Of a DNA stretch of 64,000 nt, positions 9,771 through 55,776 are shown one piece after another. The position numbers and the translations under genes are program-made. The notes beneath the pieces are model-generated. The model worked only from the letters and a program-made list of their open reading frames with translations. It had not been told where the DNA came from and made no database searches. Numbering within the stretch: the stretch's first letter is position 1; each line of letters begins with the position of its first letter. The stretch is from sequence record MW749006.1, one strand, 5' to 3'.

Positions 9771-9781
9771 GAATAGCTAAT

Positions 9782-10000
9782 GTCAACTACCCCTACCTTA
9801 AGGTAAGGGCTTGTGAAGAGTAGCCAACTACTCCAACAACTAAGCTGTTGTACTAGCCGGATTGTAACTTAGCTACAGCGACGTGGTAGTCGCAAGAATA
9901 CGTCTCGAATGCTTCTCTAGTTCGGACCTCTATGGTAGAAAGTGGCGAAGAGACCTTGACTTGTCAACAAGATCCCGTAAGGGAATAACTTAAGGAGGTG
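9782..10000 (+). ncRNA. omega-RNA scaffold (HEARO/OMEGA-like) of IsrB
   Basis: About 220-nt structured non-coding region directly 5' of isrB: GTCAACTACCCC...GGGCTTG start, internal hairpins, GAATGCTTCTCTAGTTCGGACCTCT...GGCGAAGAGA segment resembling omega-RNA core motifs, ending in an AAGGAGG RBS. Confidence 0.8.
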
Positions 10001-10005
10001 TTCAC

Positions 10006-11133
10006 ATGCTGAACTCCCAAGAACCAGCAAAACAAAGATGGGTTCCTGTGGTGTCTTCCACAGGTAAACCCTTGATGCCTTGCTCTCCCAAGAGAGCTAG
10101 GAAACTAATGTCCAAAGGTAAAGCTATACCTAGACACCTTAAAGGACTTTTCTACATTAAGTTAACGGATAGAAGTGATGGTGAGGTTCAATCCGTTGTT
10201 GTGGGTATAGACCCGGGAAGTAGATACGAGGGATACACGGTTAAGTCAGCTACTCGCACTTTCTTAAACGTCAACTCACTAGCTGCTGATGGTAAACGTG
10301 TAAAGAGGATTATGGAAGCTAGAAGTAACTCTAGGAGAGCTAGACGACAGCGTAAGAATCCGTACCGAGCTAATCGAATGAATCGCTCCAGAAGTAAAGG
10401 GTGGGTTCCACCCTCTACTAAAGCTAGGTGGCAACTTAAACTTAACATTCTGAAGTGGTTTGCTAGATTATATCCAGTTACCAATGTGGTTGTGGAGGAT
10501 GTTATCTTCGCTACCGAGAAAGGTGGTAGTGTACGTAACTTAGGATTCTCAGCTATCCAATCTGGTAAGAATTGGTTATATTCTCACATAGTAGCTCTTG
10601 GTTACAACCTAACCACTTTCAAAGGAAGTCAAACAGCAGCTTTCAGAAGACGATTGGGATTGTTCAAGACCACGAACAAAGCTTCTAAGTTGTTTGATTC
10701 GCACTGCGTAGATTCATGGGTACTCGCTAACGAGGTTTTAGGTAACCAACTAAAACCTGACCTAACGCACGTACTAGAACTCAAACCGCTTACTTACATT
10801 AGGAGGCAACTACACCGTACTTGCTTCAAGAAAGGAGGTATTAGAAGTAGGCGTGGTGGTACTATGTCTCTAGGTATTCAGAGAGGTACTCTGGTAAAAC
10901 ACGTTAAACATGGTAAATGTATAGTAGGGGGTAACAATGGCGTAGACAGAGTTAGTTTACATTGCAACATCTCTGTTAGAAATTTAACTCGGAATACTAA
11001 ACTAGTAGACTTGCAACTCATAGCTCACTCACCTTGGTTACTGGTAGATAGACTACGTACTTGTAAGAAAGAGAAGAACGCTAGACGTTACAACAGATAT
11101 TTACTTAGGAACTCGTTACTAGGTAATATGTAA
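10006..11133 (+). CDS. isrB: IsrB RNA-guided nickase (IscB family lacking HNH; RRXRR/PLMP-RuvC)
   Basis: N-terminal PLMP (GKPLMPC), RuvC-I GIDPG, Arg-rich bridge helix RRARRQRK, RuvC-II VVVEDV, RuvC-III SHCVDS; no HNH insertion; 375 aa. Confidence 0.85.
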   Translation: MLNSQEPAKQRWVPVVSSTGKPLMPCSPKRARKLMSKGKAIPRHLKGLFYIKLTDRSDGEVQSVVVGIDPGSRYEGYTVKSATRTFLNVNSLAADGKRVKRIMEARSNSRRARRQRKNPYRANRMNRSRSKGWVPPSTKARWQLKLNILKWFARLYPVTNVVVEDVIFATEKGGSVRNLGFSAIQSGKNWLYSHIVALGYNLTTFKGSQTAAFRRRLGLFKTTNKASKLFDSHCVDSWVLANEVLGNQLKPDLTHVLELKPLTYIRRQLHRTCFKKGGIRSRRGGTMSLGIQRGTLVKHVKHGKCIVGGNNGVDRVSLHCNISVRNLTRNTKLVDLQLIAHSPWLLVDRLRTCKKEKNARRYNRYLLRNSLLGNM

Positions 11134-11140
11134 GTTAACC

Positions 11141-11170
11141 GAGTAGATAGAGTATTATCTATCTACTCCC
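11141..11170 (+). terminator. Hairpin after isrB
   Basis: Perfect 10-bp stem GAGTAGATAG/CTATCTACTC. Confidence 0.5.
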
Positions 11171-11217
11171 TTTCCTCCCCTCCCTAAAGGAAGGGGTCAC
11201 CATGGAGTAAACCATAT

Positions 11218-11766
11218 ATGTTTAACCAGATTCTAGAAAAAGCATTACCAGAAATCAATTCACATTTACCTTTAGATAGTTTTACAGAGATAACATCAGT
11301 GCGACCTGGGAAGAACAACGACACTCATTCTATAGTTTTAGAGGGAGTGGATGTGGATGGTTGTCGAGTGATTGAATCTTACTGGATTGGTTGTCGTGAT
11401 TCAGATTGTGGTTTAGAGAATGTCCATGAACTAAAAGAATTACCAGACGGTTTGTTGGAGGTAATGAACAAGTGTGGTAATGAACTTACGTTACTACAAA
11501 CAGAAGCTATTGTTTACCATCTGAATAAACTACAAGGTTTAACTGAAAAAATCAGTAACGACTATGTAGGTGGTATCTACTCTTATAACGACGAAAACGT
11601 TGGAGATAGAACTTGGCGTAAGTTCTTAGTAACAGAAGTCACTAATCCGGTATTTCCGATGAGACTACGTGGGGTCTCTATGGACGACGACGGTGAGTGT
11701 CGTGAATTAGAAATCTCCCAACTGAACTTGTTAGAGCGTGTTGGTGATTATCCTCCACTACTCTAA
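11218..11766 (+). CDS. Hypothetical protein
   Basis: 182 aa; its GGAG RBS lies within the element right end. Confidence 0.7.
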   Translation: MFNQILEKALPEINSHLPLDSFTEITSVRPGKNNDTHSIVLEGVDVDGCRVIESYWIGCRDSDCGLENVHELKELPDGLLEVMNKCGNELTLLQTEAIVYHLNKLQGLTEKISNDYVGGIYSYNDENVGDRTWRKFLVTEVTNPVFPMRLRGVSMDDDGECRELEISQLNLLERVGDYPPLL

Positions 11767-39493: not shown

Positions 39494-39518
39494 GTAACAA
39501 GAACTACCTGTAACACTA

Positions 39519-39558
39519 GTTACCTCTGGGGATCATTCCTCAGAGGTAGCTTTTTTTT
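39519..39558 (+). terminator. Intrinsic terminator of chmA
   Basis: GTTACCTCTGGGGA-TCAT-TCCTCAGAGGTAGC followed by T8. Confidence 0.85.
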
Positions 39559-39885: not shown

Positions 39886-39943
39886 ATGTCAACTACCCCT
39901 CCCCCCCCCCGGGGAAGGAAGGGTCTCCATGGAGTACAGTTTT
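39886..39943 (+). mobile_element. 58-bp internally deleted (ends-only) derivative of the IsrB element
   Basis: ATGTCAACTACCCCT matches 9779-9793 exactly; GGAAGGGTCTCCATGGAGTA closely matches the right end GGAAGGGGTCACCATGGAGTA at 11189-11209; the two are joined by a C10 run. Confidence 0.75.
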
Positions 39944-41107
39944 ATGAAACCAACACAACTAGATCTAATAGAACCAAACCCTTTTGAGGGTATGGACGAT
40001 AAACAAATTATCGAACACATGTTAAAAGAAGACTATTTACCGTTACTAAGATACGTAGTTAATCCCACTGAACGAGTTATTGTTGAAGCTTTAACTATTA
40101 ATGGAATGAACTTACGTTGGGTAAAGGAACAAACTCCTTACCTATGTAGTCTAGCTGTTAAACAGAACGGATACTCTATTCAATGGGTTAAAGATCAAAC
40201 AGAAGAACTCAAGTGGTTAGCTTTAAGGGAGAACGCTGAGTGCTATCGTTTCATTAAAGAACCCACCGAAGAAATGAGTATCTTTATGGTTTCTGACTCC
40301 GACATTAAACCTTCTTTAGATATGGTTAAGAATCAAACTAAAGAGATCTGTTTAGCTGCCGTTGAAACTTTTGGATACAATCTACGTTATGTTGAAGAAC
40401 AAACTGAAGAGATGTGTTTGTTAGCAGTTAAACAAGACGGATTTAACATACGGTATGTGAGAGATCAAACAGAAGAAATCTGTATGGAAGCTATCGCTAA
40501 TGAACCAGACTCACTAATGTACGTTAAAGAACAAACCGAAAAGATGTGTTATTTAGCAGTGTCTAAAGCACCAAATCTAGTTAAGTATGTTAAGAAACAA
40601 ACATTACCTATCTGTATGGTTGCTGTAACTAAAAGTCACTTTACATTGAAGTACATTAGAAACCAAAATGTAGCTATCTGTATGACTGCTGTTATTCAAG
40701 ACGGGAGAGCCTTACAGTACGTAAGAGAGCAAACTGAGGAGATCTGTATAGAAGCTATTACTAATCACCCAGACTCCTTTAAACACGTTCACAGACAGAC
40801 TCCTAAGGTATGTTTGCTAGCTGTTAAACTAAACCCTTATCTGTTATGTGAAGTACAAGACCAAACAGAAGAAATCTGTATGGAAGCTATCCAGAATAAC
40901 CCTTTAGTTATCTCACACATGTGGTTTCAAACTGAGAAGTTATGTATGGACGCTGTAAGGTTAGACTCTAGTGCAATTGAACGTGTAAGAAACCAAACAG
41001 AAGAAATGTGTCGGTTAGCATATGAGAATAACCCAAAGACTATTATTTGGATCCGAGACTCAAATGTAGTCTCTAAACTTATTAACGAAACATCCCAGTC
41101 TAATTAG
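39944..41107 (+). CDS. DUF4116-like protein with more than 12 tandem 24-aa repeats
   Basis: QTEEICMEAI..N...L.YV repeats; start at ATG 39944 spaced correctly from GGAG (track start 39929 overlaps the RBS). Confidence 0.75.
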   Translation: MKPTQLDLIEPNPFEGMDDKQIIEHMLKEDYLPLLRYVVNPTERVIVEALTINGMNLRWVKEQTPYLCSLAVKQNGYSIQWVKDQTEELKWLALRENAECYRFIKEPTEEMSIFMVSDSDIKPSLDMVKNQTKEICLAAVETFGYNLRYVEEQTEEMCLLAVKQDGFNIRYVRDQTEEICMEAIANEPDSLMYVKEQTEKMCYLAVSKAPNLVKYVKKQTLPICMVAVTKSHFTLKYIRNQNVAICMTAVIQDGRALQYVREQTEEICIEAITNHPDSFKHVHRQTPKVCLLAVKLNPYLLCEVQDQTEEICMEAIQNNPLVISHMWFQTEKLCMDAVRLDSSAIERVRNQTEEMCRLAYENNPKTIIWIRDSNVVSKLINETSQSN

Positions 41108-54105: not shown

Positions 54106-55776
54106 TAACTAAAGTAACTAATTTACATCAACTATTATGTGAAAATATATGGTAGTAGGTGGTTAAGGTGTATAATATACTTCGCGTAAATAAAAGATAT
54201 TCGATTGATCTTCAAGGTAATGTTAAGTTAGACGATGTCAAAATTGTAGATAAAGATTCCACTGAAAAAGTAACAATTGAGATTGAAGGTAAGTTATTTA
54301 AACTATGTCCTATATGGTTGGGTTTAATAGCTCACTATCAAGTAGAGGTTTCTGTTAAAGATCTCTTTAATATTTCTTTTGTAAAGTGTGTGAGTAAACT
54401 CTTACGCTATCGGTGTGAAAATAAAATGGTTTTTAATAAACCAATTATCTACAAACCTGGATTTAGGGTAGTTCCCGATTTGATGAGATACGCTGTATCT
54501 AGAAACGGTGAAGTCATTTCTATAAATACAGACAGGTCTTTAAAGATTCAAACTGGCCCTAATGGTTATCCGGTTGTAAATCTTTACGATCCAGACAAAA
54601 ATCGTTATAGGTCAGTTGGCGTTCATATACTAGTGGCTAGAAGTTGGGTTGTAAATCGTAATCCAACTATTAACCACGTTGTGAATCATAAAGACGGAAA
54701 CAAAACTAACTATCATTACCTTAACTTAGAGTGGACTAACGGAGTTAAGAATAACATACACGCCAGAGATACTGGATTAACGTCAGATAACATTAACTGT
54801 ACACTTTACGACACTGAGACTCACAAATTTGTAGACTTTCCTTCTATCTCCGAAGCCGCTAAAGCTATAGGATATATTAGAAGTTCTATAAAGACAACAA
54901 TAGTGTTGAATGGAGTTAAACAATTAAGGTTAATCTTTGGTAGATATTATCTTATCCGAAAAGACTGTGAGTTTAAAATTGAAGATGTTAAAACCTTTTT
55001 AGAGTTTAAAAGAACTGCCAATAAAGGACCTTACGAAGTATTATGTATTAAAAGTGGGGAAACCATGACGTTAAACTCTGTACCGGAAATTACAAGACAT
55101 ATAGGTATAAATGAGTCGAATATCTACCATGCTTTAGGTAGAGGACCAAGTTATCCTGTAGGAGATTTCCTAGTTAGAGTTAAAACAGATAAACCATGGC
55201 CTAAACCAGTTCCTCGTAAGGTAATAAATCGACCTGTTAGTATAGAAGCTAGGAAAGACGGTAAGTCTTTAGTCTTTAAATCTATACGCGAAGCTACAAC
55301 CCATCTAGAGTGCGACAAGAGTACTATAACTAAAAGACTTAAAAGTCCGGATAGGTTTGGTGCTTATGAAGGATGGACCTTTAAAAAAATAGTTACAATA
55401 TAGTCCTATTACAACGAAACTTGTAATAGAATTCTCTCTAATTGACGGGAAAATCCTTAGAGCTTTATCTACCAAACTACTACAGGAAACTTAGTAGCGG
55501 CTAACAGTAATGTGTTAGGTACGGTAAAAAAGATAAAGATTGGGTGATCCGCAGCGAAGCTTCTAAATATAGTCGGGAGACTAGATACGAAGAACGTTCA
55601 ACGACTACATGACTTACCATCAAGTAGGAGTCAGTGACTCCAAAACGGGAGACACCTTAGCGTGTGTAATGACGTAGGTGAAGATATAGTCTGTTCCTGA
55701 AGGAAAGCTTCAGGCGGTGCCGCTCTAACTGATAGAGACAGGCCGGGTAAGCGTAACGAACTTACTGGACATAAAG
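54106..55776 (+). mobile_element. Group I self-splicing intron with homing endonuclease
   Basis: 5' exon ends in U (GAT|TAA); intron ends in G (AAAG|AAA). Core elements P AATTGACGGGAA (~55440), Q GATCCGCAGC (~55546), R GTTCAACGACTA (~55596), S AAGATATAGTCT (~55680). Splicing restores IGD|KVVFGNQMKS. Confidence 0.88.
54159..55403 (+). CDS. Intron-encoded HNH homing endonuclease (NUMOD4-HNH-NUMOD1, I-HmuI-like)
   Basis: YAVSRNGEV (NUMOD4-like), VHILVARSW...VNHKDGNKTNYHYLNLEWTN...NNIHA (HNH), repeated F.SI.EAA/A...L C-terminal DNA-binding modules. Confidence 0.88.
   Translation: MVKVYNILRVNKRYSIDLQGNVKLDDVKIVDKDSTEKVTIEIEGKLFKLCPIWLGLIAHYQVEVSVKDLFNISFVKCVSKLLRYRCENKMVFNKPIIYKPGFRVVPDLMRYAVSRNGEVISINTDRSLKIQTGPNGYPVVNLYDPDKNRYRSVGVHILVARSWVVNRNPTINHVVNHKDGNKTNYHYLNLEWTNGVKNNIHARDTGLTSDNINCTLYDTETHKFVDFPSISEAAKAIGYIRSSIKTTIVLNGVKQLRLIFGRYYLIRKDCEFKIEDVKTFLEFKRTANKGPYEVLCIKSGETMTLNSVPEITRHIGINESNIYHALGRGPSYPVGDFLVRVKTDKPWPKPVPRKVINRPVSIEARKDGKSLVFKSIREATTHLECDKSTITKRLKSPDRFGAYEGWTFKKIVTI

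Follow-up and report, generated by a model that had tools for sequence, protein, structure and literature searches.

The locus

The DNA analysed here, called the window, is a stretch of 64,000 nucleotides that corresponds to positions 62001-126000 of the 200,233-bp record of Bacillus phage vB_BspM_AgentSmith (MW749006.1). AgentSmith is a jumbo phage that carries tubulin-like and multi-subunit RNA polymerase (RNAP) genes, and in translated alignment its gene 98 is 48-65% identical to the chimallin-family protein of a relative. An unannotated unit of 56 bp, termed m1, lies on the plus strand at 39888-39943, directly upstream of gene 100 (AGENTSMITH_100). The product of this gene contains five DUF4116 repeats. 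The parts of m1 and the adjoining start codon, in window coordinates, are:

39888..39895, plus strand: 5' tail GTCAACTA, 8 nt that open the omega-RNA scaffold, and outer tail of RE (TnpA nomenclature)
39896..39923, plus strand: terminal imperfect hairpin, common to both ends of the full copies, with an 8-nt expansion (C-run plus GGGG)
39924..39936, plus strand: conserved tail TCTCCATGGAGTA of the RBS-carrying end, with GGAG at 39931-39934
39937..39943, plus strand: spacer CAGTTTT, 7 nt; the canonical tail is ATATTG
39944..39947, plus strand: ATGA target/TAM motif 3' of m1, likely the true start of the DUF4116 gene

The original prediction placed a 58-bp, ends-only derivative of an IsrB element at 39886-39943. 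Exact and near-exact matches to both ends of a full copy in the same window bear out this derivation. The 15-mer ATGTCAACTACCCCT, predicted to be a left end shared with the full copy, occurs exactly twice in the window, at 39886-39900 and at 9780-9794 (9779-9793 had been given for the latter). The chance of a second exact copy in 128 kb of two-strand sequence is estimated arithmetically at ~1e-4. At the other end, the 20-mer at 39917-39936 and the sequence at 11190-11209 differ at 3 positions, and a second match appeared in 0 of 100 shuffles, so the proposed right-end copy is significant. A model built from the five minis described below recovers m1 at E=1e-11. Chance similarity of m1 to the element ends is ruled out by the shuffles, the HEARO start, the empty sites and the genome profile search.

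The C10 run at 39901-39910 and the GGGG at 39911-39914 had been read as a linker fusing two ends. Both runs are present, but alignment of the five minis places them within the shared terminal hairpin as an 8-nt expansion that lengthens the stem predicted by RNA folding. A similar C12 run is found in the hairpin arm of the second full copy in this genome. Rather than two joined ends, m1 is a single chimeric hairpin, preceded by the outermost 8 nt of one end and followed by the outermost ~20-28 nt of the other. With its expansion, it has diverged further than any other mini, matching the canonical form at 39/57. The fold energies of the mini hairpins are no better than those of shuffles (z between 0 and -1.4), and thermodynamics alone is therefore uninformative. 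The TCTCCATGGAGTA tail is conserved in full copies and minis with an intact RBS-carrying end. Positions 39888-39936 can be assigned to the element with confidence, and 39937-39943 are uncertain. CAGTTTT may be either a diverged element tail or a native spacer left by a secondary deletion, and comparison at the m2 site (below) suggests a native origin.

As predicted, m1 is invisible to ORF-based annotation. The annotated start of AGENTSMITH_100 is the ATG at 39929, inside the element tail CCATGGAG. The usual ATG-GAG-TAA of the tail reads ATG-GAG-TAC in m1, which puts the ATG at 39929 in frame with that at 39944. The ancestral start is probably 39944, where the ATGAAA of the DUF4116 gene directly follows the mini, as had been proposed. 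A site scan found no promoter-like or terminator-like site inside m1. The nearest strong terminator-like site is at 39518-39551, upstream of gene 99, and a weak 5-pair site lies at 39978-39991 on the minus strand, inside gene 100.

The full IsrB element in the window

The parent of m1 is represented in the window by full copy 1, which has the following parts:

9782..11217, plus strand: full copy 1, IsrB/omega-RNA element, 1436 bp
from 9782, plus strand: omega-RNA (HEARO)
9790-9809, plus strand: first terminal hairpin
10006-11133, plus strand: IsrB ORF, 375 aa
11177-11196, plus strand: second terminal hairpin
11197-11217, plus strand: tail with GGAG, followed by the ATG of AGENTSMITH_74 at 11218

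In a Pfam search, the ORF at 10006-11133 matched RRXRR alone (E=4e-40), with no HNH domain. Its top solved relative is the IsrB nickase of D. thermocuniculi, DtIsrB (8DMB; E=1.7e-41, residues 13-309), and IscB chains align over residues 13-132 only. Directly upstream of the ORF, 9782-9960 matches the Rfam HEARO family with E=1e-6; the score, 41.6 bits, falls short of the gathering score, which is 83. This match was obtained with an E-value threshold rather than the gathering threshold. HEARO is unseen at the default setting because of this low score, and at the gathering threshold the window yields only a group I intron elsewhere. Within the sub-gathering alignment, the 5' helix and the first hairpin align well. 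The HEARO consensus opens with GUCAacuaCCCC, followed by a hairpin ending in GGGG. The G at 9782 and the G at 39888 are therefore the first bases of the omega-RNA scaffold, and the A and T that precede them are flank. Thus, m1 is 56 bp long, and the A/T at 39886-39887 are not part of it. The domain and RNA matches identify the parent as an ISC-type transposon (IS200/IS605 superfamily) that encodes an RNA-guided nickase, IsrB, and its probable omega-RNA (HEARO). There is no transposase among the annotated genes of the AgentSmith record.

Upstream of the terminal hairpin of full copy 1 is an ACTCC that, by prediction, forms base pairs with GGAGT in the donated RBS, so that the hairpin is closed off between them (window 11165-11215). 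This partner is absent from the minis, and the RBS may therefore not be equally accessible in the two kinds of copy.

The group I catalytic intron (Rfam RF00028; E=3e-19, 81.8 bits) lies at 55384-55713 on the plus strand. It shares 20 nt with the 3' end of AGENTSMITH_112 and runs into the gap before AGENTSMITH_113. From this position, the ORFs of AGENTSMITH_112 and 113 may be exons of one gene.

Element boundaries and target

Approximately 30 proteins are 80-88% identical to AgentSmith IsrB, and all are derived from metagenomes except that of the second AgentSmith copy. No other isolate phage with the same IsrB family was found in isolate-phage databases, where the next best protein is 43% identical. 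Nine contigs were fetched, each with homologues of AgentSmith genes or with phiKZ-type jumbo-phage domains. The element locus differs in each of the nine, except that L009 and L013 share one site.

Filled and empty sites can be compared at two junctions. At the RuvC/gene-68 junction, AgentSmith is empty and reads ...GGAAGTTCCTGT/ATGTAC, and in L012 the element separates ...TTCCTAT from ATGTAT. At the gene-33/34 junction, the AgentSmith sequence is ...AAGGAGCTTATC/ATGGCT, and in L010 the element separates ...CTTACC from ATGGCT. The element therefore extends from the G of GTCAAC to the last base before the ATG, and its insertion produces no duplication. It is inserted between the RBS-spacer of a gene and its ATG(A), leaving the native RBS and spacer on the far side. 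The full element ends with a near-identical hairpin, T(C/T)(A/T)CCATGGAGTA and a further 6-8 nt. Terminal inverted repeats and target-site duplications are absent from all copies. Subterminal imperfect hairpins are found at the ends of the full copies, one at each end in all but L011, whose second end is truncated. In TnpA nomenclature, the left end of the original prediction is RE and its right end is LE.

The filled/empty comparisons rule out an element end at GGAG or GGAGTA for the canonical copies. Such an end is conceivable for the AgentSmith copies with odd tails. Of the 14 scored sites, 7 have the canonical tail ATATTG, namely full copy 2 of AgentSmith and six loci on other contigs, and m1, m2, m3 and full copy 1 have non-canonical tails of 7-8 nt. 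The empty site for full copy 1, at L012:7335-7382, is not clean; 46 nt of L012 intergenic DNA are missing from AgentSmith. Part of this intergenic stretch, AAATACCATAT, resembles the tail of full copy 1, AAACCATAT, which points to secondary deletions beside the element.

At both empty AgentSmith sites, that for L012 (record ~68975) and that for L010 (record ~35289), the second base 5' of the ATG is not the one in the guide-side flank of the relative's element. These TAM-proximal differences could be homing-escape mutations; chance is also possible, as there are two cases and spacer DNA is unconstrained.

The target was scored at 14 independent sites with an intact end, from AgentSmith and the other contigs. 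ATG directly follows the element at 14/14 sites and ATGA at 10/14, against a background of 0.015 per position for ATG. The downstream ATG opens an ORF of at least 60 codons at 13 of the 14. At the exception, L015, it opens 5 codons, and the specificity is therefore for the sequence rather than for translation as such. The prediction that the element targets ATG thus holds on the downstream side. On the left side, the ATG at m1 is coincidental, as it is made of two flank bases and the first G of the element; other copies are preceded by AA, TA, CA, AC, GA, CC, CT or TT. These rules predict the empty junction at m1 to be ...AGTCAT/ATGAAA rather than the ...AGTC-ATG-AAA proposed originally.

ISC transposons have 5'-GTCA termini and insert at N/ATGA without duplication (PMC4810608). 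The IscB scaffold is derived from an end of the transposon, with the guide located outside that end; the TAM, TTCAT, reads ATGAA on the opposite strand (10.1101/2023.03.14.532601). The TAM of IsrB is NTGA or NTG, and the nick falls 8-11 nt upstream (PMC9581776). The boundaries and target read from the AgentSmith family agree with the published ISC target and IsrB TAM.

Copies in the AgentSmith genome

For a genome-wide census, the record was assembled from annotated stretches and searched with the element, the mini and a profile made from the minis. AgentSmith has 2 full copies and 3 minis (m1, m2 and m3) at five loci. The occurrence of the family at more than one genomic site had been anticipated. 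No additional significant copy was found in the AgentSmith genome with the profile built from five minis. Apart from full copy 1 and m1, the copies are:

record about 1432 down to 1, minus strand: full copy 2, 88% identical in DNA to full copy 1
record 151093-151140 (L016:4093-4140): mini m2
record 148750-148797: mini m3

The last 21 nt of full copy 2 are found at the other terminus of the permuted record, where they directly precede the ATG of gene 215. The copy is contiguous only if the record is taken as circularly permuted. The start of the GenBank record splits its terminal hairpin and tail (positions 1-26 and 200227-200233).

The three AgentSmith minis share one layout: GTCAACTA, one imperfect hairpin (CCCCTACC, loop, GGAAGGGG), T(C/T)TCCATGGAGTA, 7 nt and ATGAAA. 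In m3, CTCTGTAGAGTA takes the place of T(C/T)TCCATGGAGTA. The sequence GTCAACTA is identical in all 16 copies, full and mini. In the full copies, the hairpins at the two ends are direct repeats.

A probable RBS carried by the element end

The canonical RBS-carrying end is GGAGTAATATTG. Apart from L015, all copies whose end is intact have a GGAG at 8-10 nt upstream of the target ATG; the motif is GGGG in L008 and AGAG in m3. In L010 and L012, the native AGGAG or GGAAG is displaced 1.4 kb upstream. With the native RBS left upstream of a 1.4-kb insert, the downstream gene must use the GGAG of the element. On this sequence evidence, we infer that the GGAG replaces the displaced native RBS of the downstream gene, and the stranded native sites in the relatives uphold the earlier suggestion that the element donates an RBS. 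No description of a GGAG at RBS distance in an ISC/IsrB element end was found in the literature examined.

Neighbourhoods of the minis in relatives

Element-free carriers of the unit, which would speak against the original prediction, were not seen at the m2 site, where the 97.5%-identical relative L017 has no mini. L017 reads ...CGAAA/ATAATCGGAAGTAAAAAACT/ATGAAAG at this site, with 20 nt replaced. The m2 tail GGAGTAAACAATT resembles the native RBS-spacer of L017, GGAAGTAAAAAACT, and the odd tails may thus represent native spacer that a further small deletion has brought up against the GGAGTAA of the element. The stop region of AGENTSMITH_144 is replaced by m2: the gene continues for six codons inside the mini and stops at the TAA of the hairpin loop, giving 425 aa as against 419 aa in L017.

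Both m2 and m3 coincide with mosaic breakpoints. Identity to L017 is 93-100% left of m2 and 61-82% right of it. Left of m3, identity to L018 is 95-97%, and on the right of m3 the genes are unrelated. These breakpoints fit import with flanking DNA (co-conversion after an IsrB nick) and recombination at a shared unit alike. The homologues of genes 145 and 146 are in swapped order in L018.

The gene 99/100 junction was found in no relative, so neither a full nor an empty state is seen at the m1 site. Gene 100 has no close orthologues, its matches being generic DUF4116 proteins of at most 49% identity, and no relatives of gene 99 were found in IMG/VR or among isolate phages. In L015 and L076, the interval from the chimallin gene to the RNAP gene lacks genes 99-101. 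The full IsrB copy of L015 in this interval was considered as an orthologue of m1 and rejected, since the intervening segments have no homology.

Origin of the mini-copies

The two terminal hairpins of the full copy in L007 are identical at 20/20 positions. A virtual solo of L007, made of the outer 8 nt, one hairpin and the outer 19 nt, is a 47-mer. This 47-mer matches the mini of L076 at 47/47 positions, that of L098 at 45/47, m2 at 45/49, m3 at 41/49 and m1 at 39/57. L076 and L098 are distant AgentSmith-like metagenomic phage contigs with protein identity of ~37-65%. One of their two minis lies between homologues of genes 106 and 107, and the other follows a dCTP deaminase gene; each precedes ATGA. 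A scan of IMG/VR with the mini pattern gave no match. A looser pattern gave at least 120 matches in GTDB genomes and 89 in JGI metagenomes, among which only L076 and L098 are genuine. Almost all the others are chance matches in high-GC coding DNA, in line with expectation for a pattern that specifies 19 bases and was searched in about 1e12 positions.

Other copies show further states of loss. At L009:5993-6717 (and likewise in L013 from 5703), there is a second, divergent, internally deleted IsrB element that joins the scaffold start GTCAACTACCCC... to the C-terminal half of an IsrB ORF (228 aa). At L011:1217-2600, a full copy with a shortened IsrB of 352 aa lies in the 3' end of a gene-77 homologue, and its RBS-side hairpin and tail are deleted. 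A 53-nt remnant at L018:4120-4172 has 98% identity to AgentSmith record 73124-73176, which covers the last IsrB codons and the stem after them. The remnant is separated by 4 nt from the stop codon of the gene-144 homologue, which places it at the m2 junction, and has lost the terminal hairpin and RBS tail. Together, these decay products support a general decay series.

Because collapse of the L007 hairpins reproduces the L076 mini at 47/47 positions, a solo-hairpin deletion scar is a better reading than a mobile MITE. Both a MITE-like derivative and a deletion scar had been offered originally; the scar fits better, as m1 has one chimeric hairpin and neither inverted repeats nor a target-site duplication. 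We consider it likely, with a fair measure of doubt, that m1 is the remnant of a full ISC-type/IsrB copy that lost its interior between direct-repeat hairpins. A competing account holds that the minis are themselves mobile, as REP- or PATE-like non-autonomous units of 47-56 bp placed 5' of ATGA by a Y1 (TnpA-type) transposase acting in trans. The five minis at five loci have complete outer termini and one architecture, with ATGA at every one. They are shared by AgentSmith and two contigs with ~37-65% protein identity, yet apart from m1 they are identical at 41-47 of 47-49 positions. PATEs and REPs are, moreover, known derivatives of the IS200/IS605 superfamily (PMC4810608; 10.1101/2023.03.14.532601). 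We nevertheless hold mobility of the minis to be unlikely. Each mini has a single hairpin, and the TnpA dimer of IS608 requires one at either end. The phage record has no annotated transposase, and the m2 junction in L018 bears a different remnant of a full copy. The AgentSmith minis have lost the canonical ATATTG tail and are mutually diverged (37-40 matches in 51-57 alignment columns), unlike the products of a recent burst of one mobile mini. Separate mobility is also not needed, since hairpin collapse of a full copy gives an exact mini.

The unit could also be regarded as a native regulatory motif of the phage, a hairpin with an RBS, that IsrB targets rather than one derived from it, given that it always stands just 5' of a start codon and has GGAG inside. 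This is very improbable, as GTCAACTA and the hairpin form the conserved 5' start of HEARO/omega-RNA in bacteria generally, the motif is absent from the empty sites in AgentSmith and L017, and only three copies are present in 200 kb. A different question is whether m1 arrived, as a mini or a full copy, with an accessory cassette (genes 99-101) from another phage. Under this account, the five copies are no sign of repeated transposition within the genome, and the unit may have begun either as a solo remnant or as a mobile mini. L015 and L076 lack genes 99-101 between the chimallin and RNAP genes, genes 99 and 100 are without close orthologues, and m2 and m3 sit exactly where similarity to relatives changes. 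On the other hand, m1 lies inside the cassette rather than at its edge, and no donor is known. Import of m1 is conceivable but doubtful. In any case, the 88% identity between the AgentSmith full copies needs at least two independent acquisitions or an old duplication.

Under the preferred reading, that of a solo-hairpin remnant, a full 1.4-kb copy would once have occupied the m1 site, or been present in the phage that donated the gene cassette. Insertion would be the work of a Y1 transposase that acts 3' of TCAT, on the complement of the IsrB strand. The 19-nt linker from the cleavage site to the hairpin resembles that of IS608. The genome is ~90% coding and has 1855 ATGA sites on both strands. 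The surviving insertions may be those at start codons, where the built-in RBS would compensate, with insertions at ATGA elsewhere being disruptive. The interior of the full copy would then have been lost through recombination, or slippage during replication, from one of the direct-repeat hairpins (~20 nt) to the other. The remnant, with one hairpin and no omega-RNA or IsrB, would probably be immobile and nearly neutral, and its donated GGAG would keep gene 100 translated. The empty sites that are not clean (20 nt replaced at m2/L017 and 46 nt at full copy 1/L012) mean that extra deletions or import by recombination must be assumed as well.

Possible homing immunity and significance

In a solo, GTCA replaces the NTG TAM after the flank, and a solo would therefore not be a target for an IsrB guided by the same flank. 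Solos may be immune to homing, and the remnant may be nearly neutral. A stronger proposal, which we regard as improbable, is that solos are selected, homing-immune 'vaccination scars' and perhaps also recombination linkers that swap cassettes between divergent jumbo phages. If they are scars of this kind, precise loss of the element would restore the flank and ATGA and permit nicking and re-invasion by the IsrB of a co-infecting carrier, and collapse would shed 1.4 kb, keep the donated RBS and destroy the adjacency of the TAM. If they are linkers, the positions of m2 and m3 at mosaic breakpoints would be explained.

This type of transposon is already known, as are its target and the occurrence of derivatives that encode no protein. 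New relative to the literature searched are the single-hairpin solo form of 47-56 bp and its repeated occurrence in jumbo phages of the nucleus-forming type, the RBS-carrying end by which the element can insert between an RBS and a start codon, and the two solos at mosaic junctions. These observations outline a life cycle of an OMEGA/IsrB transposon in lytic jumbo phages, with ATGA insertion, a built-in RBS, a single-hairpin scar and association with mosaic junctions. They also matter for annotation, because the scars shift called starts (AGENTSMITH_100) and extend upstream genes (AGENTSMITH_144, which ends in the hairpin loop). The filled, solo and empty alleles in related phages offer a system for testing transposon homing between co-infecting phages, and resistance to it.

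Comparison with known systems

The parent resembles the ISC transposons (IscB1/IsrB, HEARO/omega-RNA) in its 5'-GTCA terminus, its subterminal imperfect hairpins at both ends and its insertion at N/ATGA without duplication. It likewise encodes an RRXRR/RuvC protein without HNH, and upstream of this lies a HEARO-like RNA, the putative scaffold of which begins at the boundary of the transposon. It differs in its low HEARO score (41.6 bits, with 83 as the gathering score), in being carried by nucleus-forming-type jumbo phages, in having GGAG at RBS distance in its target-side end and in having no TnpA in the annotation.

The minis are similar to palindrome-associated transposable elements (PATEs) of the IS200/IS605 superfamily in that they are ends-only, protein-less and have termini in common with a coding element. 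PATEs keep both end hairpins and are typically longer. The minis have one chimeric hairpin between two outer tails in 47-56 bp, and so differ from PATEs in the number of hairpins. Classical MITEs differ from the minis, which have no terminal inverted repeats and no target-site duplication at any copy. With the REP sequences of REP/RAYT (Y1) systems, the minis share a single short imperfect hairpin, a conserved 5' oligonucleotide (GTCAACTA) and a relationship to IS200/IS605 ends. They differ from REPs in having three copies per genome, no BIME-like pairs, no known RAYT here and the opposite transposon tail on each unit. By analogy only, they are also like solo LTRs, as remnants left when direct terminal repeats recombine and the interior is deleted, though here the repeats are 20-nt hairpins of a DNA transposon.

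PeSL cassettes carry promoters, not transposon ends; the minis consist of transposon ends, and no promoter-like site was found in m1. The PeSL cassettes of T4-type phages were reportedly described by Arbiol et al. in 2010 as short repeated units of stem-loops and expression signals at gene starts and mosaic boundaries, and the minis resemble them in both positions. By this analogy, one may speculate that the minis act as recombination linkers.
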